64,000 nt of DNA from positions 44,491,810-44,555,809 of the forward strand of contig NC_052152.1 of assembly GCF_902713615.1 (NCBI RefSeq). Reading direction: 5' to 3'. A model generated the notes under the pieces. The model worked only from the letters and a program-made list of their open reading frames with translations, had not been told where the DNA came from and made no database searches. The translations under genes were made by a program, and so were the position numbers. This DNA is from Scyliorhinus canicula. Its lineage: Eukaryota. Positions 26,980 through 51,222 of this stretch are shown here, piece by piece (position 1 is the stretch's first letter; every line of letters begins with the position of its first letter).

Positions 26980-27063
26980 TCAGCGACGAGGATGTGGAGG
27001 CACGGTTGGTAATTGCTGCATTTGCAGTTGGTCATATGTGTCTTGTGTAGCTGCACTCAGTCC
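26980..27063 (-). CDS. CD247: CD247 exon 8 coding part, GLSAATQDTYDQLQMQQLPTVPPHPRR* (completes ITAM3)
   Basis: Acceptor gctaacaatttaatgcaattatttttag| with a ctaac branch point. Matches human [21 protein letters not shown]. TGA stop at 26982-26980. Confidence 0.97.
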   Translation of the reverse strand, partial: GLSAATQDTYDQLQMQQLPTVPPHPRR

Positions 27064-27139
27064 CTAAAAATAATTGCATTAAATTGTTAGCTGATTGGGT
27101 GTATCAAAAAGAAATACTTTCATATTAATGTCCACAATG

Positions 27140-27818
27140 TTCATGTCCACAGATCTCTGAAGGTTGCCACTCAAGTGGATAGAGCCATGAAGAAGGCTTA
27201 TCGTGTGTTAGCGTTTATTAACAGGGGGCTTGAGTTTAAGAGCTGCGGGGTTATGCTGCAACTATATATGACCCTGGTGAGATCACATTTGGAGTATTGT
27301 GTGCAGTTCTGGCCACCTCATTATAGGAAGGATGTGGAAGCACTGGAAAGGGTGCAAAGGAGATTTACCAGGATGCTGCCTGGTTTGCAGGATAGGTATT
27401 ATGAGGAAAGGTTGAGGGAGCTAGGGCTTTTCTCTTTGGAGCGGAGGAGGATGAGAGGTGACTTAATAGAGGTTTATAAGATGATGAGGGGGATAGATAG
27501 AGTGGACGTTCAGAGACTATTTCATCGGGTGGATGTAGCTGTTACAAGGGGGCATAAGTATAAGATTCAGAGTGGGAGATATAGGAGGGATATCCGAGGT
27601 AGGTTCTTTACTCAAGAGAGTGGTTAGGGTGTGCAATGGACTGCCTGCTGTGATAGTGGAGTCGCACACTTTAGGAACTTTCAAGTGGTTATTGGATAGG
27701 CACGTGGAGCACACCAGAATGACAGGGAGTGGATAGCTTGATCTTGGTTTCGGACAATGCTCGGCACAACATAGAGGGCCGAAGGGCCTGTTCTGTGCTG
27801 TACTGTTTTATGTTCTAT
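27140..27818 (+). mobile_element. Young 5'-truncated CR1 LINE (HER1-like) in CD247 intron 7
   Basis: Nearly intact RT C-terminus (ORF 27175-27627, LVRSHLEYCVQFWPPHYRKDVEALERVQRRFTRMLPG). Its tail gctcggcacaac...gggccgaagggcctgttctgtgctgtactg is shared with the HE1 SINEs. Confidence 0.9.
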
Positions 27819-29562
27819 TAAATTATTTTTCACTGCAGGGATAATCCATTGATGCCCTGTAGGAAACTCAGGCTTGCAGAGAATGTTGGTCAGAGATAAC
27901 TACAGGTGTATAGCCCTGATTTTCCACCAGACAATTCCTACAGGGGCATATCACACCACCATGAGCACAGGATTACAAAACGTTACTTTGTTTAAGGAGT
28001 TTCTAATTTTAATTCTTAATATTGGGCTGGATTACAAAGTTTTCCAATTCAATTCACTGTGGAGCAAGTATGTGAAGAATGTAGTGTAAAGTGCGTAAGT
28101 CAGGAATTTGGTGAGAATCAGAATTCGGTGCAGAACGAGAAGCTGATCAATTGCTTCTAATAGATTGATTTATGTAAGCTTCCCGCAGCAAGTATTTAAA
28201 GATTTTGGCCAGTGTTGAAGTTAAATGCTTAATGCACGTTAGTCTGTAGACAAAGAAACGACTTAACAACAAACTAAAAAGCGAAATATAAATAATCTGT
28301 CAAGAAATAGCAGAGCATGTTGTGTGTCTGTGGTAGTTTGTGGACAGCAAGACTGTCCCAAGTGAACATGTCTGCAGCAGATGTCTCTATCTCTAATCTG
28401 CAGCTCCAGCTCAACACATACAGAACAGTCGGCAAGAGATCAGGTTTGGCGATTGCCAGGAGCTAATTTGAAGAATAGAACCTTAAAGGGTTATAAACCC
28501 TGGATTATTACCCGAGACACATGCAAATTGGCATTGAGGCAAGTATATTGGGGAGGCGAACACCTGATTTAAGGAGTGGTGTGAGAAAGAATATTTCCAT
28601 TTCATGGGACGCTGGCACCAGTACTGGGACAGTAAGGGAGCACTATGCTGGGTTCCACTTGCAACAGGCTGGCACCAGAGTCCAAACAAAAAGAATAGAT
28701 TAGGCAGGTGCAAGGATTTAAACTAGTAAATGTGCCGGGGGTGGGGCTTGGGCAAAGGTGTTAGAGACAGCACAAATAATTGTTCAAAACCAATCAAAAG
28801 TGTAAAGAGTAGAGTAACCTTGGAAATTTATGTTTTAGGCACTACAGTTAAAAGAAAAACTAACTGATGTAAACTGTTTAAACCAGAAGAGACAAATCAG
28901 AAATAGAGGTGAAACAAAACATTAGAACAGAAGCACAAGTTAGGGTATATGGCCCAAGTAAACATTCTTGTACAAATATTTGGCCAAAAGGAACACACTG
29001 AGTGAATTGCAGTTGCAAGGACTATATTATTCATGCAAAACAGTAAGATCCTAGTATATTTTGTTTCCAACCATAAGGTCTATGGGGAAGGCAGGATAAA
29101 CAAGCTGGGGGTGAGTAGCCTTGGTGATTAAGGATGAAAATATTTCAAGTAAGAGGATCTATCAAGTGATAAGCAAACAGAGGAGACTGGACAATATTAA
29201 GAAATTGAAAGGGATTTAACACTGTAATGGGAGTTGTTTATAGGCCCCGTGGTAGCTGCTGTAAATTAATAGATTGTGTAAATACAGACATTACACGAAC
29301 GTATAGTCACGGCTAAGTGGTTTTAATGGGAGATGTAACTCATACAGACTGAATAAACAATAGCACATGACAGAAAAATGGTGAGTTTTGTGTGTGTCTG
29401 GGATAGCTTTCTGTAACAATAAGGGGCAGGCTAAATTAGATTTTGCATTGAGTCACATTTAATTAATAGCCTAATAGTGCATGAACATTTGTCTAATAGT
29501 AAACAGAACATGGTGGGGCTCAACATAGTTTTTGAAAGGGAGAAACACAAAACAGTTACTAA

Positions 29563-30445
29563 GGGCGCTATCTACCAGCCTCCCAGTGGCAGTGTTTAAC
29601 ACTGGTTTCCACAACCGTGGAGCAGGCATACAGCACTTGGGGGGAAGGAGGGTGTCCCAGGTAATTGGGGCCTCTGGACAGGCTGTTTCTCCCAATGCCA
29701 CCTGGGCACTGTGGCCCTGCCAACCTGGCACCCTTGCAGTGTCACCTGGGCACCCTGGTGATGGCAAACTGGGCAGAGCCAAGGTACCCAGAAGGCATCT
29801 TGCTCAGGACGGAGATTGGGCGGTGGGGTGTGGAGGACTCTCAGAGTCCCTAATTAGTATATTGGGCATTGCGGGAGTCCAGAGGCCGGGAAATCAGGGT
29901 GTCATCTCCTGCACTGACGGAGCCTTAAGTGTAGCCTTGCCGAGGCCCAGTTAATAATGGGGTCGTTCTTGGTGTTCCAAGCACCTTGCTAAATACACCC
30001 AAAACGGGGCTTTTTTTTTCCATTCGATCTCTCTCACTCTAAAGGTGCGATCCAATGGCTATGCTGTGCCTAAAAAGCAGCTTGCCACGGCATAGCCGAT
30101 GAAAGGTGTGGGGTGCCCTGCATGAGTGTTGGGGCAGTGCCGGAGGGACCAGGGAACCTCCCGTACTGCATTCTGGGGGTGGGTCGGGGGTCGCTTCAGG
30201 TGCCTCAGAGATCAGGGTGCCATTTTTAAATGGTGTCCCGATCTCTTGCTACACCGGAGAGTTCTGGTGAATGGAGCTCTCCAGTACACATGTGCGGCCT
30301 CGGCTGTGCAATCCCCACTGAGGGTCTGTATACAATGCGATTCGCATTCTGCAGACATGTATTTCATGGTGCTACGAGCGTCAGGGAACACGTGGCTAAA
30401 CGCACTTGCTGTGGGACTCTGTTCCTAATTAGTTGAATTGAGCCC
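29563..30445. mobile_element. PIF/Harbinger-like MITE or two abutting MITEs
   Basis: TAA TSD at 29560-29562 and 30446-30448. Imperfect terminal inverted repeats (TIRs) GGGCGCTATC / GGGCTCAATT. Internal TIR-like ends at about 30020-30060. Confidence 0.65.
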
Positions 30446-31021
30446 TAAGGTACAGGTGAGGTGACTTTCATGGAATGTGACTGACACTCCACGGACAATG
30501 GGCAAATCCAAAACAGGTTAAATGACAAGATAACAGATGTTTTAAATCAGAACCAGTTCATTCCTGAAGAGACAGGTGCTCTATCTGCAAAAGAAAACAC
30601 AGCCATGGCAACTAAAGATAAAGAGACAACATAAAACTAAAAAAGCATGCAAAAGTACAAAAGCAAAGCGTAGACCCTGACCAATTGAAAAGACACAAAG
30701 AACAGGAAAGGATGAAACCACATATTGAGCTATAAAAAGAGTATAATATAAAAACCTTGCAATGGATACCAAAATCAACACAAAAATATTTTAGTGATGT
30801 TCAAAAGATAATTTCTTGAAAATTGATGTGATATTTTCAATAAAAATATGGTAATGGTGGACACACTGAATAATTAGATGGTGGACACACTGAATAATTA
30901 CTTTGCATCGATATTAACAGTTGAAAAAGAGGTCAGCGTACCAGACATTCAAAAAAAAATCCAAGATTGAATCAGATATTAAACAAAATTAATGTAAACT
31001 AACAATAATGTAGGAAATAAT

Positions 31022-31692
31022 GGGCTGCATTTAACAAAACGGTGTACTTCTCACACCTGCCTCGGAAAGAAAGTTGATCGGCAGCGGCCAATAAGCCCGC
31101 CACGCAACCATAACATGCTGGAGAGGGACTAAACTAGCTAAGAGTGGGACTTCTGCCCCTCATTGGGAAGAAGTCCCGCCTTTGAGAGCTGTGGTCGGAA
31201 GCTCTTGCATTCCTGGCAGCCCCAGGGCTCCGTAGTGGCCGCTGGCAGGACTACAGGAAAGAGTGTAATGATAACTGCAGATCAGTAAGTCCTGGGCTTT
31301 TAGTGTGGGGATGGATCCGAGACCCCAGGGATCTGGGTTTTGGAAGGCAGATGGTGATGGTGGGGATGTTCCTGATGCATACCCCTCCCCAAATGAGATG
31401 TCCCCTTTCCTGCCGTTTTTCATCAAAGCCACAAAAAACAGCCTGCACGTTCCCGCCCATGCCAACTGCATTATGGTGTGGGCAACATAAGCCCGTGAAT
31501 AGGCAAATTAATCTTTGATTAATCATGTAAATATAGTAGGCAGATGACCAATTTTGGCACTAACTCATTAGTGTATTCTGGGGGTCAGTTTGGGGGTGGG
31601 CAAGAGATCGTGGGCTAGCCGCATAATATATTATGAGGCCACCCACCATGCAACTGAAATCACATCCAGCAGGGGGCTGTAGAATCCAGCCC
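31022..31692. mobile_element. Harbinger-like MITE
   Basis: TIRs GGGCTGCATT / GGGCTGGATT (reverse complement of aatccagccc). Interrupts the old CR1 RT. Confidence 0.6.
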
Positions 31693-32607
31693 AAATGCCA
31701 GGTACAGATGGTTTCCATCCCAGAGTTTTAAAGGAAGTGAGGAAATTGCAGATGTCCTAATTATACCAAAGTTTCATTGATTTAGGAAATGTTACTTTAG
31801 GTTGGAAAATTGTGCATGTCACTCTCCTTTTTTCAGAAAGGCGAGAGAGAAATCAGTAAAATATAGACCAGTTGGCCTAACATCTGATATTCGGTAATTA
31901 CTAACATACACAATGAAGGATAGGTAGGGTAACTGACCGCCTTGAAAATGTTCAGTTCATCAAAATGAACCAGTATGGATATGTGCAAAATGGTTGATGC
32001 CTGCCAAAACTGATTAAATATTGTGAAGAGGTGACTGAAGGAGTGAAGCAGGAGAGTGTCCATGTGCATTAGTTATATGTATTTCCAGAAGGCATGTGAG
32101 AAAGTCCCTCATACAGACATGGCTGAAGTTGTAACTCATGAAATTGGTTATTGAAGATCCAAAGAAACTTGGAAACCAGCTACATGGGTCATCATTTATT
32201 GTGCCTGTTCATGATATTTTTTATCATAAAGGCTAATAGAATACTGGCATCTAGAGGACTGGAATAAAAGGAGGTGGAAGTCCTGTTTCAGCTATTGCAA
32301 CGTCCTGCTTAGACCATATCTAAAGTACTGTGAGCAATTCCGAGCACCATATATTAGAAATAATATATTGAATGAGGTTAAAGACATTGGGAGTTGCAAT
32401 GTTCGAGAGAAATTTGAAAATGAGAATTTTTAAATTGAGGTATCGCTTAACCAGGAACCAGTGTAGCACAAGGGTGATTGATGAATGGGGCACAGTGCAT
32501 GTTAGTTAAGTTTCCACTAGGTGGAAGATGAGAGGGCAGCCTAATGGCTTATTTATCAATTGTATGTCTTCTTCTGAAGGCAGCAACTCTATTAATTTAT
32601 TTCCTAC

Positions 32608-32643
32608 CTGGTAAATATCATTCCCTCCTTTGCCTCTTCGCTT
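32608..32643 (-). CDS. CD247: CD247 exon 7, KRRGKGGNDIYQ (basic stretch and first Tyr of ITAM3)
   Basis: Acceptor tgtttttcttcctgaacag| and donor CAG|gtagga. 36 nt like human exon 7 (RRRGKGHDGLYQ). Confidence 0.95.
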
Positions 32644-32929
32644 CTGTTCAGGAAGAAAAACATACAAATTATTCCTAAAGTGCATATTTATCAGTTTCAC
32701 GGCTAAATCTCTGCTAAATTTCACATGAACACACTTGAGGATAGATTGTCCAAAGTTTTTGCTCACATGTGACAACTTGCATCTTATGAACATCTACCAG
32801 AAAATCAGAATGAGGTACAGACAAGGTCCTTGAATAATTTACCCTTTGTGGTTTTCACTGAATCCTAAAAGCGCAGAAAGCCGTTCTACCCATAATGTCT
32901 GCATCGGGTCTCCAAATGAGCAATTCACA

Positions 32930-33762
32930 TAGTGCCTTTTTCTATAGGTCCTCCATATTTTTCCTTTTCAGATAACAGTCTGAAAGATGTTTCTGCAGAT
33001 GTGCCATAGAGAGCATCCTCTCCGGCTGCATCACAGCTTGGTATGGCAACTGTTCGGTCCAAGATCGCAAGAAACTGCAGAGTGTGGTGAACTCGGCCCA
33101 AAGCATCACACAAGCTTGCCACCCTCACATTGATTCTGTCTACACCTCCCGCTGCCTCAGGAAGGCAGACAGCATTATCAGAGACCCCTCCCACCCAGGC
33201 ATTGCCTTCTTCCAGACCCTTCCATCAGGCAGCAGGTACAGAAGTCCGAAGACCCACACATCCAGACATAGAGGAACAGTTTCTTTCCCACAGCTACAAG
33301 ACTCAACGACTGCCCCTCAGACTGATCTGTTCCCTGTAAGAACACTACTCACGATGCCCTATGCTGCTCGTGCTCATGTATTTTCTTTGTTTGGCCCCTT
33401 GTTCCATACTGTCACCAATCACTGTTTGTCGATGTACCATTTGTCAATGTACTCTGTTGCTTATTCTTTTTGTCTACTCTGTACGTACTGGGGCTGGTTT
33501 AGCTCACAAGGCTAAATCGCTGGCTTACCAAGCAGGCCAGCAGCACGGTTCGATTCCCGTACCAGCCTCCCCGGACAGGCGCCGGAATGTGGCGACTAGG
33601 GGCTTTTCACAGTAACTTCATTGAAGCCTACTCGTGACAATAAGCGATTTTCATTTCATTTCATTCATTTCATTTCATTTCATTACTGTGTACATTCTCC
33701 GGTCGCAAAAAAATACTTTTCACTGTATTTCGGTACATGTGACAATAAATCAAATCAAATCA
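32930..33762 (+). mobile_element. Rex-Babar LINE 3' end in intron 6
   Basis: RT C-terminus ...ESILSGCITAWYGNCSVQDRKKLQSVVNSAQSITQ...IIRDPSHPG. Tail gtgacaataa(atcaa)n. Confidence 0.8.
33491..33683 (+). mobile_element. tRNA-derived SINE family B, (ttcat)n tail
   Basis: Box A/B head (gggctggtttagctca...ggttcgattccc). TSD tactg. Near-identical to four other copies in the window. Confidence 0.9.
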
Positions 33763-34479
33763 GTCTAATTTATTTTTTATTGCACCCGTCACACTCTTGT
33801 TCCCTTTCCTTTCTATTCTTTATTCTTATTTCTTAGTCCACGCCATGCCTGCCTGTTAAGCTTTTCAGTTGTATTGTTGCATTTTCTCTTATCATCTTTC
33901 CCAGCATCCACAATTAATTTGAAAGCATCCTATCAATATTATAGGAAGCAAGCAGTCTGCTGAGATTATTGGTGCATGGAGGCACAATTTGTGGTCCTGG
34001 CCTTGCTAGACCTGCTATCTAGCTTTCAAGACTGAACATCTCTTATCTGGGATTTCTTGGTGTTGAAAGATCTGCTAACTGAAATAAATTAATAGTGACA
34101 TAAATAATGAAGTAGTATGTGTGCATATCATACAAAAACGACACTATCTGCACTGGAGGCAGTGATCTGTACACATTTGCACTGGAGATGTAGGCTGTGC
34201 AATATTTATTCAGTTGGTAACATAAGCTGAACAAATTAAAACTGTCTTTGTCACTAAAATAATTTCTTCTTCCCTCCAAACTCAATCCTTCTGCTTTGAT
34301 GGGAATGCAACTTATTTATTTTGTAATACGCAAATGCATTGATAGTGAGAAAGACAGAATTAGACATGGTAAATAGCTTTTAACGTGATGGACTAAGTGA
34401 CCATATAATTTATAATTGGTCATAATTATTTACAGGAAGTTACTATAATCTATGCATGAATCAGTACTTCTGATCATAC

Positions 34480-34536
34480 CTGCTGAGTTGGTTTGAGTTC
34501 ACCATAAGGCTCACTTCTGTTCTTGGGATTCAGTTT
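34480..34536 (-). CDS. CD247: CD247 exon 6, KLNPKNRSEPYGELKPTQQ (completes ITAM2)
   Basis: Acceptor atttattttgtttgcag| and donor CAG|gtatga. 57 nt, the same length as human exon 6. Gives YSKL-x8-YGEL. Confidence 0.93.
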
Positions 34537-34594
34537 CTGCAAACAAAATAAATTTTGACCCTCCGGTTAAAATGCAGATCAATTACAAATGAAT

Positions 34595-34895
34595 GTACCT
34601 GTCAATGCAATTCTACCTCGAAGGACAAAGGCAGCAGATGCGCTGGAATACTGCCATCTGAGTTTCCCTCCAAGCCACACCATCCTGACTTGGGACTATA
34701 ACTCAGTTCCGTCAGTGTCGTTGGGTCAAAACCTTGGAACTCCCTTCCGAACAGCACTGTGAGTGTACCGACTGTCTGCATCGGTTCAAGAAGGTGGCTC
34801 ACCACCACTTTCTTAAGGGAAATTAGGGATGGGCAATAAATGCTGGTACTGGCCTAGCAAGTGACACCCACATCCCATGAAAGGATTTTTAAAAA
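34595..34895 (+). mobile_element. CR1/L2-group LINE 3' end
   Basis: Tail ggttcaagaaggtggctcaccaccac...agggatgggcaataaatgctgg, the same family as 16715-18380. Confidence 0.75.
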
Positions 34896-35785
34896 CACAC
34901 GTTAAGAGATGTGCAAAACAAGTGCAAGCTCATTTTGTTCTATTGAATGCCAATTGTTTTACATGGCATCTTCTTCAAACATGATCAAGAATTACAATGT
35001 AGATGGTCATTGGTATAGCTGTACTAATCTATGACACCTGGTGGATGATGCACACAGCTGATTGACTTGAGAGCTGACAGGGAATTGTGCTACAGGGATC
35101 ATTAGGGTATTTTGAATGGGGCAGGTGAATAGGGGTGGAGGGGTGATTAGATTAAAATTTCAAAAATCTACCCAACTCTTTCAGGCCTCAAATATACCCA
35201 CTTGCAGTTTTGATAGTGAAGGGTTCAGGGACACGGGCAGCTCACAAGATGATCCAGATATGCTAATGAGACTGCATGCTTCAAATTTTGACCCTTATGT
35301 CTGCAGAGTGGGTTTCACAGGGTTTGGAAAACCCAGCAGCTAAAGTGAGGTGAGAAGAACCAGCTCCATCAGAAATGAGCACGGAATGTAGAACAGGAGT
35401 GCATCCCCAAACTCACTTTCCTTCCCTGTGATCGACCTCCCAACCCACATTCAAATCATACTTCCCCATTTCAATCAATGATTCCCACTTCTCCCCTCCC
35501 CAGCTGTAGCCTTCCATCTAATGTCTTCCCACCTGTCAGCCAGCCAAACTCTCAATGTGGTTGGACGCCAGCCGGAAAACAGAGAGAGAAAAAAATTCAG
35601 TAGGACCAACATTACTCCTATTTCAAAGATTTCCCAGCCATCATTACGCCCCATAATTCTCAGAATGAGATTTGAATTAAGTTCCACAACTTGCAATATT
35701 CTGCACATGCCCCTCGGGGGTAGGTGATGATGAATAGGTTTTACATCAGAATCAAAACATACTTTTGATCACATCCTTCACACTT

Positions 35786-36015
35786 CAGTGGTATAGGGGT
35801 ATTGTAACTGAAGTAGTATTCCGGAGACCCAGGGTAATACCATGACGACCCACATGGCAGATAGTAAAATTCGAATTGAATAAAATCTGGAATTAAAAGT
35901 CTAACAAAGACCATGAAACCAATGTCGTAAAAAGCCACCTGGTTCACTAATGCACTTTAGTTGACTCTTAAATGCCCCCTCAAGGGGCAGTAAATGCTGC
36001 CCCAGAGTAACAAAT
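35786..36015 (+). mobile_element. tRNA-derived SINE family D, decayed
   Basis: Head cagtggtatagggg...ccagggtaat, core aataaaatctggaattaaaagtctaa...catgaaacc...ggttcactaatg, and a tail resembling the CR1/L2-group LINE end. Confidence 0.6.
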
Positions 36016-36246
36016 ATTTGGGATCGGGAGTCCAGCCAACAGATTCTGCTCCTTCCCACGTTAGTCACAATCCAGCAGAATATCTTCATTACAAGTCAGT
36101 TGGTAGATGATTCAACTTTGTGCCAGCTAAATACTAAGAGTTAAAAGTGTGTGCTATTATTATGTTGTTTTACTAGGGAGGGACTAGTTTAGACAGTAAA
36201 GATTCTGCAGCATGCATAGTCATTTCTTAAATTCCGAACTACTTAC

Positions 36247-36288
36247 GGAGTAGGTGTCATTATGAGCCGCATCATCTCTCCTTTGGTT
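36247..36288 (-). CDS. CD247: CD247 exon 5, NQRRDDAAHNDTYS (first Tyr of ITAM2)
   Basis: Acceptor tttatttatttttctcttaacag| and donor TCC|gtaagt. 42 nt, phase 0-0. Positional homolog of human QRRKNPQEGLYN. Confidence 0.92.
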
Positions 36289-36893
36289 CTGTTAAGAGAA
36301 AAATAAATAAATGTTATATATTTAACAATGTTTTGCGCAGTTAATACATTGCGTACAGAAAATGAGACTGTTGACTCCCTGGCTACCTTAAGGGATACTG
36401 CAGCACTTGCATGTTTCTGGTAGCATGCCCCATTTATATGTATATCAGCATCCTAGGACTGCAATTTGCTATTATTGGTTGGAAATGGTCAGAGCGTGCA
36501 CTAGGGGTGATAGAACCAAAATGGTGCCCTGCAAAGGTAAGTTTGTAATTTTGCCCTATTCAAAGATCCACCCTCCACATTAATGACCAACTCCTGCATT
36601 TACATTGCTGTCAAATGGGACAGTCCGATATCGGCCTGGCCTACTACTGTGAATAACATCAGAATACCTGTTTGGCTCCTCGCAGCTCATAAAAGCCATG
36701 AGACATGGAAAGCAATGCTTTGGGTGGACTGCTGTAGGTAAAATCAGACTATTTTGCACCATTGGGACTACATAATCCTTTAATCTGGAACAGGAATTGG
36801 ACCAGCCAACATCCAGTTTTAACAAAGATGTGATAGGTGAGCAACCAATCACTCACGGGAAACAGGTTGATTATTTAAATATTATAATGAGGT

Positions 36894-37262
36894 ACATAGA
36901 ACATAGAACAGTACAGCACAGAACAGGCCCTTCGGCCCTCGATGTTGTGCCGAGCAATGATCACCCTACTCAAACCCATGTATCCACCTATACCCGTAAC
37001 CCAACAACCCCCCCCAACCCCACTTAACCTTACTTTTAAGGACACTACGGGCAATTTAGCATGGCCAATCCACCTAACCCGCACATCTTTGGACTGTGGG
37101 AGGAAACCGGAGCACCCGGAGGAAACCCACGCACACACGGGGAGGACGTGCAGACTCCGCACAGACAGTGACCCAGCCGGGAACCGAACCTGGGACCCTG
37201 GAGCTGTGAAGCATTTATGCTAACCACCGTGCTACTGTGCTGCCCCTGCTACCGTGCTGCCC
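36894..37262 (-). mobile_element. HE1-type V-SINE (family A), full length, intron 4
   Basis: tRNA head, V-domain (gtttcctccgggtgctccggtttcctcccaca) and a CR1/HER1-type tail ending (ttcta)n. Short tandem duplication of its 5' end. Confidence 0.92.
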
Positions 37263-38487
37263 CACAGGTATGTGCCTTCACTTTACCAGTCAATCTACCA
37301 GAGGCAGCCAGGTTTTTCGGGAATCTCAGCATCTCAAAGCAGGTGACAGGGTCTGAATCCATGAAGTAAATGACTTCATAGTGCTGCTTTTGGGTCAGAG
37401 CAAGAGTGTTTACTGGATTAGTTTGTTCGCTGCCCTACCAACGCTACCATCAAAACCACCATGGGACCCTCCCCCACTTCCCACAATCAGGACTCCCCCA
37501 ATACAACTATTGCTGATCAGCCCTGCAAAGAAGACTTAATGCTCGAAAGGCCTAGGGCCTGTCAACCTGGCTGCTTGAGAGCAAGAATTTCATTTACAGG
37601 AACCGTGGAATGATACATTCAGGAAATACACTCTTCCTCGTTTCCCAAACCCTTCCCCCTAACACTAAACAGCTCAGCTTCAGGCTAAAGTAACCTGCTT
37701 TCCCCAGATGTGAGGTACACACACCGCTCTCTCCCCGCATTCCACTGTGGTTTATGGTTAGATGGGGGTTAGGTGTGCACAACTTAGTATTGATTTTTGT
37801 GTATAATGTCTGTTCTTTCTACATTTTCCGCTCTTGACATACTCAAATAGGTAAACACTGAATTACTCAAGAATTTACTAATGAAAAGACAGCTGAAAGT
37901 AAGAAACAGTGACACTGCCCCATTAGTCACCGAAACCAATATTTTAAAATTGATTTACATGCATATCTTTTGTCTTGTTAACTAGAACACGCTGGGAGAA
38001 ATTAAATTTTCAATTTGCATTTTCCGTATTATCCGTCATCTCATGTGGGACTGAGCAAAAATCTGCTGTTCTTTCTTTCAAGGGCAAGAATCTATTTCCA
38101 GATCCATTGTCCTTCACTTACTGCTGACTTCACCTCCTTTTCTAATTTCATCTTTTGCCAATCTCCTCTGACCTTCCCATCTGATAATTCAAACAATCCA
38201 TCCTCAGCTTCATCCACGTTCACGCCAGCTCAATGAATGCATGCTCAGTACAAATGCTGAACTATTCTGCTGCCTTTGCTTCCACAACACTCTTCAGCCT
38301 CTCTGCTTCATCTGGATCCTCTCTTTGGCCTGTAACACTCTCCGTCTTTTTATCGAGAACTGTCAGTGTGATAATCAACCGCTTGTCAATTCCATCATGC
38401 AATTGCTCTGGTCTTTTTTCCTCTGAACTTTGGCAAGGATATCTATTCCCCATTGCTTTCCAGTGCCTGTCACTGAAAGTAGATAAA

Positions 38488-38725
38488 TGTGATGATCCAA
38501 CCACTGTATATATGTGTGCTTGCAGTAGGGGGATGTATGGCCGTACCTGTATTACAGGTTTCTATAGCCCCTACCGGCTAGCTCCGCCCACAGGGAGCTG
38601 TATTAATATTCGTAAGTTTCACTGAGATGCCATTCTACAGCTGCCGCCGGAGGAATAGCATCTCACTGTAATAAAGCCTCTCTTGTACTTCACTCGAGTC
38701 TTTGTGTACAATTGTTAGCGCCACA
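38488..38725 (+). mobile_element. Solo LTR
   Basis: TG...CA ends, GC box (ctccgccc), TATA-like tattaata and AATAAA near the 3' end. TSD unclear. Confidence 0.65.
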
Positions 38726-39491: not shown

Positions 39492-39792
39492 GTAGCACAG
39501 TGGGTAGCACTGTTGCTTCACAGCACCAGGGTCCCCATTTCGATTCCCGGCTTGGGTCACTATCTGTGCGAAGTCTGCATGTTCTCTTCGTGTCTGCATC
39601 GGTTTCCTCCGGGTGCTTCGGTTTCCTCCCACAAGTCCCGAAAGATGTGCTATTAGGTAATTTGGACATTCTAAATTCTCCCTCTGTGTACCTGAACAGG
39701 AGCCGGAATATGGCAACTCGGGGATTTTCACAGTCACTTCATTGCAGTGTTAATATAAGCCTACTTGTGACACTAAGATTACTATTAATATA
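39492..39792 (+). mobile_element. V-SINE family C (HE1-type head, different tail)
   Basis: Same head and V-domain as HE1. Tail caggagccggaatatggcaactcggggattttcacag...ctacttgtgacac, ending (att)n. Confidence 0.88.
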
Positions 39793-40388
39793 TTCAACCT
39801 TTTCAGCTTGCCAAATAACTTGCTGTAATTATGCAAAGGTTCCTAAAATGCCTTCTAGATATTTTAGAAAATTCACATATATAGAAATTTGAACACCCAT
39901 CCTCTTCTACCTCCCAATGAGTACTGATTGTAGTGTTGCTGTGGTCCAGTTAATTCAGGGAGTTAGCATAGCCTTGGCGGCATGTGCTTTTACATGCATG
40001 CTGTGGTCTGGAGCTAGGGATATTGATGGTTGAGGTTCCAACATACTTTCCATCACGTGGCTGACCAATAATTTCTCCCATTCTTATCGCTTGCTATTAG
40101 TGTGTGATCGAAAAATCTGCAAGTTGACACTTAACATGGCCAAATAGGTCCTGGGGTGGAAGTTGAGCCCGGAGATTCTGGCTCCAAGGCAGCAAAGCTA
40201 CCCATTGTGCCACAGGAACCCCTTAGTACTGTTTGTGCAAATAACAATTATAGATAACCCTAAGCATCCCAGAAATTGTTATCTCAACATTTAGCAAGAT
40301 TGCTTTTAATTTTCCAGTTGTAAAATTGTTGTTTGCCTGTCTTTGGAATCGATTATTGCTTTACAAAAGATAGGTTAAAACAACATAC

Positions 40389-40478
40389 CCTTTTTGCTCC
40401 AATTCCAGCCTCTGTGTCTTGGTTCCTGTTCTTCAACCTGAGGTGCGAATAGTCATCTTGATCTTTCTTCTGCAAGGG
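40389..40478 (-). CDS. CD247: CD247 exon 4, PLQKKDQDDYSHLRLKNRNQDTEAGIGAKR (completes ITAM1)
   Basis: Acceptor cttctatcatttttgcag| and donor AGG|gtatgt. 90 nt, phase 0-0. Completes YQPL-x7-YSHL. Confidence 0.92.
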
Positions 40479-40907
40479 CTGCAAAAATGATAGAAGTTCT
40501 GATTACCCTGACAAATTCTCCCAACTATAATAAAATCTATTTCTCGGAGGTTCAGATCAATCATGTTAACCATCTAAATATTATCCTCGGGCTTGTTACT
40601 CCATTAAAATTTGATAAATAAACCGAAGAGTATTTTTGTTTCAAATTGAGCAATGACTGAGAGAAGCTGACTTCTAATGCCAGTGTTCTGTCAAATGACG
40701 TCTACTAAACTTTCAGCAGATCTCCTGTTGAAAATTTTTATAAACCATGTTTGACACTACACTGGCATTAGAAGTCAGCTTCTCCACTCTCTGTTTTTCG
40801 GCAGATTACTTGGATCTGTGTGTGTCAGTGGTTTGCCATAGGGTGTTGCTATCTTTACTTGCTCTAAATATGGCAGTCAATAAGGTTGCCCTTCTTTTAT
40901 CTAGATA

Positions 40908-41150
40908 TTGATATTATATTGCTTTCAGAGTCGCCAGGTATAAAATGATACCGCCACAAGGTTCAACCGGGTATCGATCAAAGAGCCAAACAACCAGTTA
41001 GTTAGTTCAAGATCAATGGTACTTTATTTACACAAGATTAACTTACACATGCAACATTAACATTACGAGCTAAACTACACCTAACAGCTATGACAACCTG
41101 TACTTAACTTCAGGCACCTGGCTTAGGTCAGAGGAATAGTGCCCTTTATT
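40908..41150 (-). mobile_element. LTR fragment
   Basis: Minus-strand AATAAA and a terminal ...aatatca. Composition differs from the flanks. Truncated next to a SINE head. Confidence 0.5.
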
Positions 41151-41154
41151 CAAA

Positions 41155-41262
41155 TCGGGAGAATGTGCAAACTCCACATGGACAGTTACCCAGGGCCGGG
41201 ATTCAAACCCGGGTCCTCAGCACCGTAGTCCCAGTATTAACCACTGCGCCACATGCCACCCC
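41155..41262 (-). mobile_element. V-SINE 5' head fragment
   Basis: Reverse complement gives ggggtggcatgtggcgcagtggttaatac...gggtttgaatcccggccctgggtaactgtccatgtggagtttgcac. Confidence 0.7.
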
Positions 41263-41682
41263 TAGGGATCCTATCCTGACAAGGTACCAAATGGGTACCA
41301 AAAAGTGACAATTCTCCAGCTTGGAAGCTGGGATTTTAGACCTCTGTCCTAGCATGTGTGTTGAGTTGACCACTAGCTGTAATGTACCACTAGCTGTCTC
41401 CAGTGCCTTTGTCTTTCCCAAGCTGGGCCCATGGCAGTAGATATTTTGTGACCCACAGCTGTGACCTGGTTGGTAAACATCAAGGCATGTCCAGACAATG
41501 TGCATAAGATGGCATTTTGTGAGTTAAGCAAGTTCAACATCAACATTACTGCTCTCTTAGAGACCAGACTGGCTGACACTAGATCAAATAATGAAGCCAA
41601 TTATTCCTTCTACTTCCATGGCAAAAGTGCAGGTGATCATCGTAAACATGGAATAGGCATTACTGTCAACAACATACAAGAC

Positions 41683-44600
41683 CATAAGACATAGGAGCAG
41701 AATTAGGCCACTTGGCCCATCGAGTCTGCTCTGCCATTCAATTATGGCTGATATTTTCTCATCCCCATTCTCCTGCCTTCTCCCCATAACCCCTGATCCC
41801 CTTATTAATCAAGAACCTATCTATCTCTGTCTTAAAGACACTCAGTGAATTGACCTCCACAGCCTTCTGTGGCAAAGAGTTCCACAGATTCATCACCCTT
41901 TGGCTGAAGAAATTCCTCCTCATCTCTGTTTTAAAGGATCGTAGCTTTAATCTGAGATGGTGTCCTCTTGTTCTAATTTTTCCTACAACTGGAAACATCC
42001 ATCCACATCCACTCTATCCAGGCCTCGCAGTATCCTGTACATTTCAATAAGATCCCCTCTCATCCTTCTAAACTCCAACAAGTACAGATCCAGAGTCCTC
42101 AACCGTTCCTCATACGACAAGTTCTTCATTCCAGGGATCATTCTTGTGAACCTCCTCTAGACCCTTTCCAAGGCCAGCACATCCTTCCTTAGATATGGGG
42201 AAATTCCTCCTTCCAAAGTGCATAACCTCACACTTTTCCACATTGTATTTCATTCGCCACTTCATTGCCCACTTTCCTAGCTTGTCCAAGTCCTTCTGCA
42301 GCCCCCTTGCTTCCTCAATACTACCTGTCCCTCTACAGATCTTTGTATCATCTGCAAACCTTGCAACAGTGCCTTCAGTACCTTCTTCCAGATCATTAAT
42401 GTATATTGTAAAAAGTTGTGGTCCCAGCACAGATCCCTGAGGCACACCACTAGTCACCGGCTGCAATCCTGAAAAATACCCCTTTATCCCCACACTTTGC
42501 CTTTTGCCAGTCAGCCAATCCTCTATTCATGCCAGGATCTTACCCTGAACACCATGAGCTCTTAACCTATTTAACAGTCTCCTAAGCGGCACCTTGTCAA
42601 AGGCTTTCTAAATAAGTCACGTCCACTTGTTCTCCTTTGTCTCACTTCCTTGTTACCTCCTCAAAGAACTCTAATAGATTTGTCAGACATGACTTCCCTT
42701 TGACAAAGCCGTGCTGACTCAGTCCTATTTTACCATGCACTTCCAAGTACTCCGCGATCTCATCTTTAATAACAGACTCTAAAATCTTACCAATGACCGA
42801 AGTCAGGCTAACCGGCCTATAATTTCCCATCTTCTGCCTCCCTCCCTTCTTAAACAGTAGTGTTACATTAGCCACTTTCCAGTCCCCTGGGACACTTCCT
42901 GCCTCCAGTGATTCCTGAAATATCATCACCAATGCCTCCACAATTTCCTCAGTTATCTCTTTTAGGACCCTGGGGTGTAGTCCATCCGGTCCAGGTGACT
43001 TATCCACCTTCAGACCTTTCAGTTACCACAGAACCTTCTCCTTAGTAATGGTCACTGCACTCACCTTTGCCCCCTGGTTCTCCTGGAGCTCTGGCATCCC
43101 ACTGGTTTCTTCCACCGTGAAAACTGATACAAAGTAAATATTCAGTTTGTCTGCCATTTCTTTGTTTCCTATTATTACTTCTCCAGCCCCATTTTCTAGT
43201 GGTCCAATGTCTATTTTTGCCTCTCTCTTACCTTTTATTTAATGAAAAAATCTCTTCTTATCTTCCTTTATATTACTAGCTAGCTTGCACTCGTACTTCA
43301 TCTTCTCCCCCCTTATTGCTTTTTTAGTTGTCCTCTGCTCGCTTTTAAAGGCTTCCCAATCCTCTATTTCCCACTAATCCTTGCCACTCTGTGTGCTTTT
43401 TCTTTAGCTTTTCTGCTGTCGACATCCCTCATCAGCCATGGCTGCCTTGTCCTCCCCTTAGTATGTTTCCTCCTCCTTGGGGTGAATTTCTGTTGTGCCT
43501 CCCTAATAACCCCCAAAAACTCCTGCCATTGCTGTTCCACTGTCTTCCCTGCTCGGCTCCTTTTCCAATCAACTCTGGCCGGCTCCTCCCTCGTGTCTTT
43601 GTAGTTACCCTTATTTAATTGTAATACCGTTACATCTGATTGCAGCTTCTGCCTCTCAAACTGCAGGTTAAATTCTATCATATTGTGGTCACTGCTCCCT
43701 AAGGGTTCCTTCACCTTTAGTTCCCTAATCAAGTCTGCCTTATTACACATCACCAAATCCAGAATTGCCTGTTCCTTAGTGAGCTCTGTCACAATCTCTT
43801 AGACATTCCACAAATTCCATTTCTTGGGATCCACTACCAACCTGATTTTCCCAGTCCACCTGCATATTGAAGTCCCCCATGATTATTGCAATATTGCCAT
43901 TTTTACATGCATTTCCTATCTCCTGATTTATTTTCTGCCCCAGGAGACAGGACTGCTGCTAGGGGGCCTGTACATAACTCCCATCAGGATCTTTTTACAT
44001 TTGCGATTCCTCAACTCTACCCACAGAGATTCTATGTCTTCTGATCCTATATCGCTCCTTGCTATCAATTTAACTTCATTTCTTATGAACAATGCAACTC
44101 CGCCCCCTTTGCCCATCTGCCTGTCATTTCGATAGGACATATATCCTTGGATATTTAGATCCCAGCCCTATCCCCTTGCAACCACGTCTCTGTGGTGCCC
44201 ACACCATCGTACTGGCCAATTTCAATGAGCGCAACAAGCTCATTTACCTTGTTCTGTATACTGCGCGCATTTAGGTACAACACCCTCAATCCTGCATTGG
44301 CCACCTCCCTTTTCACACTCTCTTCAGTCACTGTACCCTGTACTGTGGCCCTTTTTGATTTTTGACTATGGTTTCACTGCCTTACACTTTCCCCCTTACT
44401 GCTTTCTGTTTCTGGCCCCATTTTACTTCCCTCCGACTTCCTGCATCGGTTCCCATCCTCCTGCCACATTAGTTTAAACCCTCCCCAACAGCTCTAGCAA
44501 GCACCCACCCAGGACATCGGTTCCACTCCTGTCCAGGTGCAGACCATCCAGTTTGTACTGGTCCCACCTCCCCCAGAACCGGTCCCAATGCCCCAGGAAT

Positions 44601-45180
44601 TTGAATCCCTCCCTCTTGCACCATCTCTCGAGCCATGCATTCATCCTATCTATCCTGACATTACTACTCTGACTAGCTCGTGGCACTGGTAGCAATCCTG
44701 AGATTACTACCTTTGAGGTCCTACTTTTTAGTTTAACTCCTAACTCCCTGAATTCAGCTTGTAGGACCTCGTCCCTTTTTCGCGTATGTGCACCACGACA
44801 GCTGGCTGTTCTCCACCCCCCCCCCCCCCCCCCCTCCCCCAGAATGTCCTGCAGCCGCTCCGAGACATCCTTGACCCTTGCACCAGGAAGGCAACATACC
44901 ATCCTGGAGTCTCAATTACGTCCGCAGAACCACCTGTCTATTCCCCTTACGATTGAGTCCCCTACCACTATAGCCCTACCATTCTTCTTCCTGCCCTCCT
45001 GCGCAAAGAGCCAGCCACGGTGCCATGAACCTGGCTGCTGCTGCCTTCCCCTGGTGAGCCAACTCCCTCAACAGTATCCAAAGCGGTATATCTGTTTTGC
45101 AGGGAGATAACCGCAGGGGGCACCTGCACTGCCTTCCTACTCTTGCTCCTTCTTTTGGTCACCCATTTTCTATCTCCCTA
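41683..45180 (-). mobile_element. Near-full-length CR1 LINE with internal deletions, sense to CD247
   Basis: ORF1 SGNH esterase (44474-44902), endonuclease (43364-44140), RT (KSPGPDGLHPRVLKE 42642-43007; GVPQGSVLGP...FADDTK 42110-42493) and a ...tcctatgtcttatg tail. Confidence 0.92.
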
Positions 45181-45964
45181 TATTGATGTAGGTATCTGGG
45201 ATGCCTGTCGTAATCTCTAAATGCCTCCTATCTCTTTGTCTATCAGGTGTAGGTTTCGTCACCATCATCTGCACTTATCCACCAACCTTCTATTGCAATG
45301 GTGAAATCAAAGATTGCTTCTCCAGCACGCTAGATGATGTTCTGGAATATCTCCCACATGGAGAAAAGTTATTTGTCCTGGGACATTTTAGCGTAAGAGT
45401 TGGATCAGACTGAGTTTCATGGCAAAGGTCCCTCAGTCACCATGGTGTTGGCAAGATAAACGGAAACAGACGTGGCTATTGAACTTTGTGCACAATGTAG
45501 ATTTTGTGTTGCTAACAGGTGTCATGATGAAATCCTAGATCTGGTCACTGGCACCAACTTGATCTGATAATCACAACAGAAGTCTGATCTGTCCAGCATT
45601 CTTCACACACTTATCACAGTTCAAACTGTGATACTGATCATTTGTCAGCAGCATTACTGAAAGTGCAATCACAAAAAATACACAAGTCTAAGCACAATAG
45701 CGTTTCACATATCAACATTCCATACTCAAGCGAAGACGATAAATGTCAGAAGCTCTTGGGCAATCCCTTTCTCCTGAGGGCTCACCAGGTAACTCTGATG
45801 AAGCATGGAACTGTGCAGTCAATCATCATTGAATCTGCAATAACCACGTTTGACAAAGGAAGAAACAGGAACAAAGATTGGTTTAAGACTCGCCTTGCAG
45901 AAATTACTACTGTTCTTGAAGCAAAGACGGCAATTCACCTGGCTTGCAATATGCCTCCTAATCA

Positions 45965-46309
45965 GGGTAGCATGGTGGTTAGCATAAATGCTTCACAGCT
46001 CCAGGGTCCCAGGTTCGATTCCCGGCTGGGTCACTGTCTGTGTGGAGTCTGCACGTCCTCCCCCTGTGTGTGTGGATTTCCTCCGGGTGCTCCGGTTTCC
46101 TCCCACAGTCCAAAGATGTGCGGGTTAGGTGGATTGGCCATGCTAAATTGCCCGTAGTGTCCTAATAAAAGTAAGGTTAAGTGGGGGGGGTTGTTGGGTT
46201 ACGGGTATAGGGTGGATACGTGGGTTGAGTAGGGTGATCATGGCTCGGCACAACATTGAGGGCCGAAGGGCCTGTTCTGTGCTGTACTGTTCTATGTTCT
46301 ATGTTCTAT
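45965..46309 (+). mobile_element. HE1-type V-SINE (family A), full length, intron 3
   Basis: Head, V-domain and HER1-type tail with (ttcta)n. Highly similar to 36894-37262 in the opposite orientation. Confidence 0.92.
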
Positions 46310-47180
46310 ATGTCGCAATCTTATGCTAGCCAAAGCACTTCTGCAAAAAAACAGCCAAGTACCGAGCCAATAAGTATAGGATCAATCTATATGAAGAAAT
46401 GCTGCTGTTAGTGGCACCAGTAATCTTTCTATGACAGTATCAAAAGAGCACTGTCACACCATCACCAAGGTTGCTCCTTTCAAATCTGCAACTGGGGAGG
46501 TATTCACTAACAGGGACAAGCAAATGACCCGCTGGTTAGAGCACTACTCTGAGTTATACTTAAATGAGACTGATATCTCTCTGCCTGTGCTTGATGATCT
46601 TCTACGTCTACCTGTCACGCATGAGCTTGATGCAGAATCCTCAATACTTGAGCTCCACAAGGCAATTGACTCCCTAGTAGAAAGGAAAACACCTGAAAAG
46701 GATAGAATATCAACTCAGCTGCACAAGTATGCAAAGTTCCACCTGCTGTCATACCTCCACGACCACCTCCTCTGCTGGAGAGAAGGTTCTGTCACACCGG
46801 ATATGCATGACACAAGCACCATCATGTTATACACCAACATAGGTGCTCCAGGGAATTGCAACAACTACTGGGACATCTCACTCTTCAGCGTTACTTGGAA
46901 GATCTTTACAAGGGTCAAGGTAATGAGGTTTTATTGACTAACGAGAAGAATATTCCCAGAGGTAGAATGTGGCTTCGGAGCAGTAGATCCACTGTAGACA
47001 TGACAGATGATCAGGTGGGAAACGCCAAAACCTATCAAGATTGAAAGCCAAGACTAAAGTGCAGCATAGCCTGATAAGAGAACTTCTGTATTCAAATGAT
47101 ACTGAACTAGTTGTCCAGACAGATGACCAACTCCAAGGTCTCATGAATCGCCTGTCCCATGCTTGTGTGATGTCCTCCTT

Positions 47181-47676
47181 CATAAAGTCATAGAGGTTTA
47201 CAGCATGATAACAGGCCCTTTGGCCCAGCTTGTCCATGCCACCCAGTTTTTACCACTAAGCTAATCCCAATTTCCCACATTTGGCCCATGTCCCACTACA
47301 CCCATCTGGCCCATATAACTGTCTAAATGCTTATTAAGAAACAAATTGTACCCGTCTCTACCACTGCCGCTGGCAGCTTGTTCCAGACACTCACCACCAT
47401 CTGTGTGAAAAAAGTGCCCCGCTGGACCCTTTTGTATCTCACCTTAAACCTCTGCCCTCTAGCATTAGACTCCCTACTTTTGGGAAAGTTGTTGACTATC
47501 TTATCTATGCATCTTATTATTTTATAGACCTCTAAAAGATCACCCCTAAGCCTCCTACGGGAATAAAGTCGCAGTCTATCCAGCCTCTCCTTATAACTCA
47601 AACCATCAAGGCCCGGTAGCATCTCAGTAAATCTTTTCTGCACTCTTTCTAGTTTAATAATATCCTTTCTATAATA
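47181..47676 (-). mobile_element. CR1 LINE 3' end
   Basis: ORF 47323-47688 (YRKDIIKLERVQKRFTEMLPGL) plus a CR1 terminal hairpin. Confidence 0.85.
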
Positions 47677-48156
47677 GGCCAGTTTCACTGTGTTGACAAA
47701 ACACTTAAGTCATTTGAGAGATTTGTGCAATAACAGGATGGGAACTGGTGAACACGGGGAAACAGTGAAAAACGCAGATCTATTTTGGATTCCTCAAAGC
47801 AGATGGAATTGTGTTGGTCCAATTAATTTTCAGCAGTAAATATTACAAACAATACTCTGTATGTACGTTTGCCCCACCTTTATCTAGAGCCATCACCAAA
47901 ATGGTGAGTAATATTTCCGGTAAAGGTGAATGATTTCTGGGTGACAAGCAACTGAACACTGATGCAGCTCAGTGTAAAAATGCACCTCAATACACTCAGG
48001 GTTCAGGCCCTTTATTAGTAGTGGGACACAATACCTTCATGATGTGCATAGCCACAGGGATAACAGCATTCTGATTTGCGTTAGGTCTAATAAATTGTAT
48101 AACACAGCAACAGTCAAAGAGCTAACCGATTTAAGGAAATGAAAACACATGCTTAC

Positions 48157-48225
48157 TTGATATTGGTCTTCTACCTGCATTTGGTTTGCAGGAACATCTT
48201 CATTTTTACCTTTTACTTTGGAGAA
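48157..48225 (-). CDS. CD247: CD247 exon 3, FSKVKGKNEDVPANQMQVEDQYQ (first Tyr of ITAM1)
   Basis: Polypyrimidine acceptor ttctttttcattttgttctcaaag| and donor CAA|gtaagc. 69 nt, phase 0-0. Begins FS like human exon 3 and ends one codon after the ITAM Tyr. Confidence 0.92.
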
Positions 48226-48500
48226 CTTTGAGAACAAAATGAAAAAGAACATTTTGCAAAAATTAATTGAATTTACTAATCCCATTGCCTGCTGTAAATA
48301 TGTTGCTAATGTAACTAATGAAAATAACCAGTTGGATCCTCATGCTCCAAGAAATTCTAAGTAAAGTCCAAATTTTGCAATAAGAGCAAAATATTGTTGA
48401 TACTGGAAAACTGAAATAAATAGAAAATGCAGGAAGTACTCAGCAGGTCTGGCAACATCTGTGGACAGAACCAGAGATAACGTTCTGTGTCTGCATGACT

Positions 48501-48676
48501 TTAGCTCACTGGGCTAAATCGCTGGCTTTTAAAGCAGACCAAGCAGGCCAGCAGTACGGTTCGATTCCCGTACCAGCCTCCCCGGACAGGTGCTGGAATG
48601 TGGCGACTAGGGGCTTTTCACAGTAACTTCATTGAAGCCTACTCGTGACAATAAGTGATTTTCATTTCATTTCATT
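48501..48676 (+). mobile_element. SINE family B
   Basis: Near-identical to 33491-33683, slightly 5'-truncated. Confidence 0.88.
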
Positions 48677-48820
48677 TCTTCTGAGTTAAAGAGAAATGTG
48701 ATGGACTATATACTCTTTGAATGGGGGGGGGGGGTTGGAGCAAAATAAAAGGTCGGGGGAGTTGGGAGAGATTGACAAAGGTGTCATGGGCAGAAGATAA
48801 AAGGAGTGGTAATGGTGGCA

Positions 48821-49135
48821 TATGGGCGATACGGTAGCACAGTGGTTAGCACTGTTGCTTCACAGCATCAGGGACCCAGGTTCCTGGCTTGGGTCACTGT
48901 CTGTGCGTAGTCTGCATGTTCCCCCCGTGTCTGCGTGGGTTTCTCCCACAAGTCCCAAAAGACATGCTTGTTAGGTGAATTGGACATTCTGAATTTCCCC
49001 CCAAGTGTACCCGAACAGGCACCGGAGTGTGGCAACTAGTGGTTTTCTTAACTTAATTGTAACTTAACACAATAACTTAATTGCAGTGTTAGTGTAAGCC
49101 AACTTGTGACACTAATAAAGTTTATTATTGTTATA
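48821..49135 (+). mobile_element. V-SINE family C
   Basis: Head, V-domain and family C tail. Confidence 0.85.
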
Positions 49136-51118
49136 AAGTTAAGATGGCAGAATGTGTTCATAGCAGAACAAAGGTCAGCACTCTGTGAAAGCAAAACGTC
49201 AAAACAAGTGACCGCTGTGGGGTGCCAAACATTCCTTTTAGGTGAAGCAGTGGTTCACTTGCACCTTCTTCAGTTTGGTCTGATGTATACTCACCGTCCG
49301 GCTCTCATGCCCATACGCCCATCCTTGACCTGCTGCAGTGTTCCAGTGAATCCCAACACAAACTGGAGGAGCAGCATTTCATCTTCCGATTCGGCACTTT
49401 ACAGCCTACTGGAATCATCATTGAGTTCAAGAACTTCAGAGGGCGAGCTCCCTCCTCCATCTTCACCACCTTTTTTCATCCAATTTTTAGTCCCACCCCC
49501 AGACAACCACCCACAAGACTTCCTCTCACTTTTTCTGAAGTTTCGCTTTCACAGACCACAGACCTTTGTTCTTCTCTTAACACATTCTGCTCTCTTACCT
49601 TTATGTCACGATGTGCACCTTCTGTAATTTTTAACACTGCTATTAACACAGCCTTTGTCTTGTGCTCATGGCACCTTGTCAATCTCTACCGAGCTCCCAC
49701 CTTCCCCTGACCTTTTATTTTGCTCCACCTGCTCCACCCCACCTTAAACATCCATCACATTTCTTCCTCTTTTTCGCTCTGAAGGAGTCATATTGACTCT
49801 AAACGTTAACTCTGTTTATCACTTCATACATGCTTCCAGAGCTACTCATGCATTTTCTGTTTTAATTCCAGATTTTTCAATTTGTTTTATGTAATGAAAA
49901 ACCAGTATCCCAACAGGCACAGTCTTCCACACTTCCGCATTACCAACAGTTATCAACAGTTATGCTTATATGGGAAGGTGGGGGTGGGAGAGAATTTGAA
50001 AATACATTTAAATTAGGCCACTTTCCTGTTACTTCTTACAACCAGCGTAAGGGGTGGAAAAGAACTGGTCATGTTTACCCTTTCAACCCCAATTCCTATG
50101 TGGCCCATGGAGTGCTGATAGGATAAAATAATTGGGAAATTACAATAAACCGTGCACTTTCACAAAATATCTTGCACTAAAAAGGCATTGTGTTCAGGGG
50201 GGGGGTGAAATTTGAAAAGTCTCCAAACATCCTGATTGGATTTTGAGTGATGATAAATAAGTTTTTTTCTTTCACGAGTGCTATCTTGGGTCTGTAATAC
50301 AATGTAAAAAGAAGTATTTTTCTGCTAAAATGAATGTGTTAATTGTTGTTGACTGATGATGAGGTCCCGGGTCTACTTGCTAGCTTGTCAGAGATACTAA
50401 CCTGCACCAGGAAGGGAACAAAATACTCCCATCGATGAATGGGCAATCATCCCCTTTTTGTTTTGAAACAAATGTACTTTTAATCTGTATGGTTTTTGTT
50501 AGTTTAATACTCGGGAAGAGGTGAAGCACTGAAACCTCAGGATAAATACTCTTTGTGCACTAGTAATTGCCACAGCTGCCTTTGGGGGGGAAGAAATCAG
50601 CAGGACTAAATCATGCTGCAATAAAGCAGGAAAAATGAAAAATATATCTAATTAAAAAAGAATGCTTTATGTGCTTCGGGCCACATTCACATTGTTTGAA
50701 ACATCTATACAATAATTGGAGCAATTGAGGGAGTTTACTTTTACATTTTAAATATTCTTTGCTCTGATGTCTTGTTTCAAGTTAGATTACAAAATTCACA
50801 AAATCAAAAGAACCAGAGAGCCTCACTACCTGGATAATTTCATTAAGGAATCACCGTGCTCTCCCACTCAATGCTGCAGCACATCAACATCTAGATTGTG
50901 ACATCCACTGGGAATACTGCACATGAATCATGGGAGCGATGTCGATTGATTTTCTCCCCATACATTTTGAACTAGTACATTGTCTGTCCATTAGAACAAA
51001 TTCACAATGATGCTGTAGAATGACCTGGAGACATGTGCACTGTTCCTCGTTTCTAACAAATATTTAATTTATGGTTCCTGTAAAACTCAACAATAGCATA
51101 TAATGGCAAATGACTTAC

Positions 51119-51222
51119 CCTCAGTTTGAGGTAGAGAGCGGTGATTATAATCCCATACACAAAGAGAATTCCATCGAGAATATAACACAATCTAGGGTCA
51201 CTCAGCTCCATAACTTCCGCAT
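51119..51222 (-). CDS. CD247: CD247 (CD3 zeta) exon 2: short ectodomain plus transmembrane helix, (D)[34 protein letters not shown]
   Basis: Acceptor ...gccatttcgacag| and donor AGG|gtaagt. Length 104 nt, phase 1 to 0, the same length and phase as human exon 2. The [16 protein letters not shown] motif closely matches human DPKLCYLLDGILFIYG, including the dimerisation Cys and TM Asp. Confidence 0.97.

Follow-up and report, generated by a model that had tools for sequence, protein, structure and literature searches.

A 64,000-nucleotide stretch of the genome of Scyliorhinus canicula, the small-spotted catshark (contig NC_052152.1, positions 44,491,810 to 44,555,809; hereafter referred to as the window and numbered from its first letter), was analysed for a gene dispersed over short exons on the minus strand. 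[quoted passage not shown] The spliced coding sequence of 482 nucleotides (nt), consisting of 159 codons and a stop preceded by a split codon, is spread over 24,243 bases (51222 down to 26980), and its product carries three cytoplasmic immunoreceptor tyrosine-based activation motifs (ITAMs), namely YQPL-7-YSHL, YSKL-8-YGEL and YQGL-7-YDQL.

Exon 2 (51119-51222, minus strand as for all the exons; 104 nt) is entered in phase 1 and encodes a short outer stalk, the dimerising Cys and the membrane span with its Asp (LCYILDG...), a segment recognised by Pfam TCR_zetazeta and by the CD3-zeta structures. Exon 3 (48157-48225; 69 nt) encodes the membrane-proximal stretch and the first half of ITAM1, ending in ...YQ, and is identified by identity to RefSeq and by a complementary DNA (cDNA) contig of another shark, which aligns from 48226. 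The second half of ITAM1 (PL...YSHL) and a linker are encoded by exon 4 (40389-40478; 90 nt), into which (40389-40419) a contig of sequencing run X1 proceeds from exon 5. Exons 5 (36247-36288; 42 nt) and 6 (34480-34536; 57 nt) contribute the two halves of ITAM2, the former ending in ...YS and the latter reading KL...YGEL; the joint 34536>36247 between them was found in contigs of three runs, as were both joints flanking exon 6. Exon 7 (32608-32643; 36 nt) encodes the basic RRGKG stretch and the first half of ITAM3, again ending in ...YQ, and is marked by the joint 32643>34480 in the three runs and by the X1 contig, which continues into exon 8. The coding part of exon 8 (26980-27063; 84 nt including TGA) supplies the second half of ITAM3 (GL...YDQL) and a proline-rich tail; it aligns to residues 144-162 of human zeta, beginning exactly at the exon border. 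Its 3' untranslated region (UTR) covers at least 26100-26979, as judged from RNA-like runs and from the cDNA contig of the other shark.

The exons were located by a six-frame motif scan (CYILD, YSHL, YGEL and YDQL on the minus strand), followed by a search for open segments bounded by AG...GT and ending in YQ or YS. Each internal exon is preceded by a pyrimidine-rich AG acceptor, all donors are GTA or GTG, and introns 2-7 measure 2893, 7678, 4100, 1710, 1836 and 5544 nt, respectively. All seven minus-strand segments of 36-104 nt that the original prediction had joined into one frame by their AG and GT signals were recovered at these positions, and the spliced product contains the CYILD motif and the three ITAMs (spacers 7, 8 and 7) that it had described. 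The gene had also been said to escape the open reading frame (ORF) track, which agrees with the lengths of the open frames around the exons; these are only 23-100 codons, and a prokaryote-style ORF list therefore does not assemble the gene.

In a local BLAST comparison with all the proteins fetched for this analysis, the 159 residues of the spliced product proved 100% identical to positions 21-179 of RefSeq XP_038657830.1, which is the S. canicula T-cell surface glycoprotein CD3 zeta chain, isoform X1 (179 residues; internal label P0151). Because of this identity to a public protein, the seven-exon assembly cannot be attributed to chance. The next best proteins after the S. canicula record were those of the great white shark (85% identity) and the elephant shark (67%), with bony vertebrates at 49% identity or less; the zeta chain of S. 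torazame is 97% identical to the window product. A query with exon 2 against 1.84 billion representative proteins likewise returned the elephant-shark CD3-zeta (P0001). The assignment to CD247, or T-cell receptor zeta, made in the original prediction is thus borne out by the RefSeq identity and by the phylogenetic placement given below, and so is its judgement that the gene itself is not novel. Catshark CD247 is already annotated in RefSeq (isoforms X1 and X2) and is an ordinary gene with nothing new about it. The cloning of CD3 chains of S. canicula was reported in 2017, according to the citation of Pettinello et al. in PMC6795676.

In addition to residues 21-179, which are the same as the window product, XP_038657830.1 contains the residues of exon 1, which lies outside the window. 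Exon 1 is predicted from this protein to comprise 58 nt (19 codons and one base), which is the length of exon 1 in the chinchilla, a bat (Eptesicus) and the bowfin (Amia). A search of the minus strand of 51223-64000 for ATG followed by 14-31 codons, one nucleotide and GT, in which either an MK.. start or a hydrophobic core was required, yielded no credible candidate for the signal-peptide exon. In GCA_902713615.2 the gene is annotated over 164,056 bases, and exon 1 should therefore lie about 140 kb upstream, behind an intron 1 of about 140 kb. Both results are consistent with the earlier expectation that the signal-peptide exon is situated beyond the window.

For a comparison of the exon structures, the CD247 proteins of the chinchilla, Eptesicus and Amia were mapped exactly on the DNA of their loci, and all three reconstructions translate back to the proteins. 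The coding exons 1-8 measure 58, 104, 57, 81, 36, 57, 36 and 66 nt in the chinchilla, 58, 104, 57, 81, 33, 57, 42 and 66 nt in Eptesicus, and 58, 104, 45, 75, 30, 60, 30 and 66 nt in Amia, and the corresponding catshark exons (58), 104, 69, 90, 42, 57, 36 and 84 nt, the value for exon 1 being that deduced from the RefSeq protein. The phases (1,0,0,0,0,0,0) and the interruption of each ITAM after Yx are the same in all four species. Exons 2, 6 and 7 are 104, 57 and 36 nt long in the chinchilla as in the catshark, and the bat and the bowfin share the phases and exon 2. The original prediction had claimed the same phases and the same lengths of exons 2, 6 and 7 for human CD247, a statement that appears credible when extended from the rodent.

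A maximum-likelihood tree was computed for the window product together with 15 named zeta chains and 12 FcR-gamma-like proteins. The window product falls inside the chondrichthyan zeta clade at 100/99, and this clade mirrors the species tree, with the chimaera branching first, followed by the rays and then the sharks. These results bear on the reading under which the catshark gene is a lineage-specific zeta-like paralogue and not the orthologue of mammalian CD247. Teleosts have zeta-like duplicates, which lends this reading some plausibility; however, the search returned one zeta cluster per cartilaginous-fish species, the chondrichthyan clade agrees with the species tree, and the exon structure, including exons 1 and 2 of 58 and 104 nt, is that of mammalian CD247. 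A paralogue is accordingly considered very unlikely, and the catshark gene is treated here as the orthologue of mammalian CD247.

The second reading to be weighed is that the gene encodes not zeta but FcR-gamma (FCER1G), an ITAM adaptor belonging to the same small family. Pfam PF11628 TCR_zetazeta is matched with 60.5 bits by exon 2 alone and with 62.8 bits by the whole protein (cut-off 25), and the Pfam ITAM model with 24.9 bits by the whole protein (cut-off 22.2). In an alignment of 13 vertebrates, Cys32 and Asp36 do not vary, and neither does any of the six ITAM tyrosines. In favour of FcR-gamma, exon 2 alone also matches this protein with 37.8 bits, as against 44.7 bits for human CD3-zeta, its best match among solved structures, and the spelling CYILD is that found in FcR-gamma-like proteins. 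With the full-length query, for which the identical stored RefSeq protein was used, human CD3-zeta (residues 24-163) scored 107 bits (E 1e-29) and FcR-gamma 42.8 bits, and the comparison of the spliced product with zeta and FcR-gamma proposed at the outset therefore comes out on the zeta side, as does the tree. Moreover, the product has three ITAMs in 179 residues, the members of the gamma-like set have one ITAM in about 86-95 residues, and exon 8 matches the C-terminus of zeta only. The zeta and FcR-gamma-like families are separated at 100/100 in the tree, with the window product among the zeta chains, and the identity of one gamma-like member (P0110) as FcR-gamma was verified by a score of 157 bits. 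An identity as FCER1G is refuted by the scores (107 against 43 bits) and the 100/100 split taken together, and its probability is considered negligible.

Evidence for transcription of the CD3-zeta gene was sought in sequencing runs. Many runs labelled as S. canicula contain 82-94% of the sampled words of 26100-27063 (exon 8 and the 3' UTR) and just 6-18% of the words of the mostly intronic segment 32400-36500, a pattern expected of RNA. Three of these RNA-like runs, each a contig run from a different study, were mapped on 32450-36450 together with one run of raw RNA reads. The depth of the contig runs is confined to the bins with exons 5, 6 and 7 and to repeats, and unique intron sequence is uncovered. 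The joints 32643>34480 and 34536>36247 occur in each of the three contig runs, have CT..AC ends (GT..AG on the minus strand) and coincide exactly with the predicted introns between exons 6 and 7 and between exons 5 and 6, respectively. A contig of run X1 extends beyond 32607 and 36289; its letters there have unique matches at 27033-27062 and 40390-40419, respectively, and exons 7 and 8, as well as exons 5 and 4, are therefore joined in this contig at the predicted bases. L004, a transcript contig of another shark, matches the seven exons one after the other; the alignments end at the exon borders or at most a few bases from them, and L004 also aligns to 27065-26350, i.e. about 650 nt of 3' UTR, at 75%.

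Three qualifications apply to this picture of an expressed and fully spliced gene, which nothing contradicts. The runs with the spliced contigs are guessed to be RNA, a guess with which the absence of intron cover fits. The predicted joins between exons 2 and 3 and between exons 3 and 4 are drawn from the RefSeq identity and from cross-species cDNA and not from S. canicula reads. Finally, the raw-read RNA run (X22) has no reads on the exons within 32450-36450; the tissue of this run is unstated, and its emptiness is therefore not evidence against expression. Of the splice junctions that the original prediction had offered for checking against transcripts, those between exons 4 and 5, 5 and 6, 6 and 7, and 7 and 8 were thus recovered in contigs, and the raw run yielded no exon reads. 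A pseudogene, i.e. a copy that is not transcribed or is decaying and in which the open frame has simply persisted, would account for the empty raw-read run but is hardly conceivable in view of the intact frame with canonical splice sites throughout, the spliced contigs, which stem from three studies and come with coverage of exons but not of unique intron sequence, the presence of the 3' UTR in many runs and the invariance of the functional residues.

The protein encoded by the catshark gene should dimerise, assemble with receptors and signal in the manner of its family. By homology with mammals, the very short outer stalk with Cys32 would give rise to a disulfide-linked homodimer, which Asp36 of the membrane span would dock onto the T-cell receptor and probably also onto receptors of the natural killer type. 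Phosphorylation of the three ITAMs on their six tyrosines would then recruit a kinase of the ZAP-70/Syk type. The stalk encoded by exon 2 is short, and the signal peptide is known only from the RefSeq protein.

The sole loose thread of the gene is a leaderless form of the protein. NCBI models a 156-residue isoform X2, which is devoid of the signal peptide and starts at a Met inside exon 2, in the catshark as well as in seven or more further cartilaginous fishes. In the catshark this Met (MELSDPRL...) is situated at about position 51211 of the window, only three residues into exon 2, and it is conserved in all six aligned chondrichthyans and also in the coelacanth. The transcript contig of the other shark supports isoform X2, in that its 5' end (L004:1-120) consists of a different exon, which contains an in-frame stop and is joined to exon 2; this alternative 5' exon found no match in the window. 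The acidic 7-residue N-terminal tail of such a chain and the strongly basic stretch after its membrane span could allow insertion with the N-terminus outside in the absence of a signal peptide, and the leaderless chain, if real, would yield almost the same mature protein as the form with the signal peptide. The transcript with the alternative 5' exon could just as well be non-productive or represent transcriptional noise, and it appears doubtful that an alternative 5' exon is used by cartilaginous fishes on a regular basis to produce a second zeta chain that lacks the leader and starts at the Met of exon 2.

Some further features of the transcript were noted. The acceptor of exon 7 (32640-32646) is a tandem CAG|AAG, of which the second AG would remove one lysine. 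In the whale shark, the bamboo shark and a houndshark, one extra residue is present at the border formed by this acceptor. A difference of one residue at an exon border is likewise seen between isoforms of human CD247. For the 3' UTR, putative AATAAA sites lie at 26121 and 26084. The zeta 3' UTRs of the catshark and the other shark (window 26350-26979 and L004:580-1169) are about 75% identical over about 650 nt, which is near the identity of the coding exons between the two sharks. This similarity could reflect either slow sequence evolution in sharks or regulatory constraint.

The introns were examined for repeats by a BLAST search of the window against itself, which assigns 12.4% of the gene span to repeats internal to the window, and about a third of 32450-36450 lies under high-copy transcripts. 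When these figures are combined with a long interspersed element (LINE) of about 3 kb, the fraction of the introns that is demonstrably repeat-derived amounts to approximately one-quarter to one-third, as estimated without a repeat library. The statement of the original prediction that the introns are mostly transposon-derived is accordingly unproven. The LINE, a decayed element of intron 3 (42113-44902, minus strand), lies outside the coding gene as intron filler and consists of RVT_1 pieces at 42113-43007 (54.4 and 28.5 bits, the latter just below the cut-off of 29.6 bits) and an esterase-like ORF at 44477-44902, which matches Lipase_GDSL_2 with 25.9 bits, under the cut-off. This ORF with its weak GDSL-esterase match is reminiscent of the esterase-bearing first ORF of elements of the CR1/L2 type. 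Another LINE, in intron 1, has an ORF of 389 codons (53193-54359, minus strand; RVT_1, 93.8 bits) oriented parallel to the gene, and the sequence around it (52296-56500, minus strand) has a G+C content of about 52% and a strongly negative GC skew. A short interspersed element (SINE)-like repeat at about 33522-33655 reaches a depth of hundreds of thousands in the contig runs and is covered by about 700 reads per strand, on both strands, in the raw RNA run. Several variant positions in this repeat recur across the runs.

No neighbouring genes were identified in the window. Pfam searches with 20 long ORFs returned LINE reverse-transcriptase pieces and one weak esterase match and nothing else, and an Rfam scan of the whole window found no family at the gathering score. 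Positions 1-16000, downstream of the gene, have a G+C content of 32-36% and just 2.4% of intra-window repeats, and no long ORF with a Pfam match was found there. Elsewhere, a gene model of the bichir, in which zeta is fused with a PF13883 domain, which we take to be of the CREG family, hints at a conserved neighbour gene.

The catshark gene restates the existing genome annotation and touches no open question. The correct reconstruction of a seven-exon vertebrate gene from the raw sequence alone, without tools, is a clean positive control. The comparisons also indicate that the eight-exon, three-ITAM layout of CD3-zeta, with each ITAM cut after Yx by a phase-0 intron, was present in the common ancestor of the jawed vertebrates and has since been altered only in intron size and in a few codons.

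Among the known systems, mammalian CD247 (human chains, e.g. 6jxr and 7fjd; chinchilla; bat) shares with the catshark gene the ITAM spacers of 7, 8 and 7, the positions of the Cys and the Asp and the same eight-exon plan with its phases, although the proteins are only about 40-45% identical. Exons 3, 4, 5 and 8 of the catshark are longer than those of the chinchilla by 12, 9, 6 and 18 nt, respectively. The additional codons of exon 8 encode an extra proline-rich tail (..TVPPHPRR), common to elasmobranchs, at a C-terminus that reads ..PPR in mammals. The introns are likewise larger in the catshark, introns 2-7 being 1.7-7.7 kb long as compared with 0.4-1.9 kb in mammals, and intron 1 about 140 kb as compared with about 60 kb in mammalian CD247. 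FcR-gamma resembles catshark zeta in its membrane span, which is related and has the Cys and the Asp in common with it, and in the way its ITAM is split; it differs in having a single ITAM in about 86 residues and a clade of its own at 100/100, whereas catshark zeta has three ITAMs in 179 residues.

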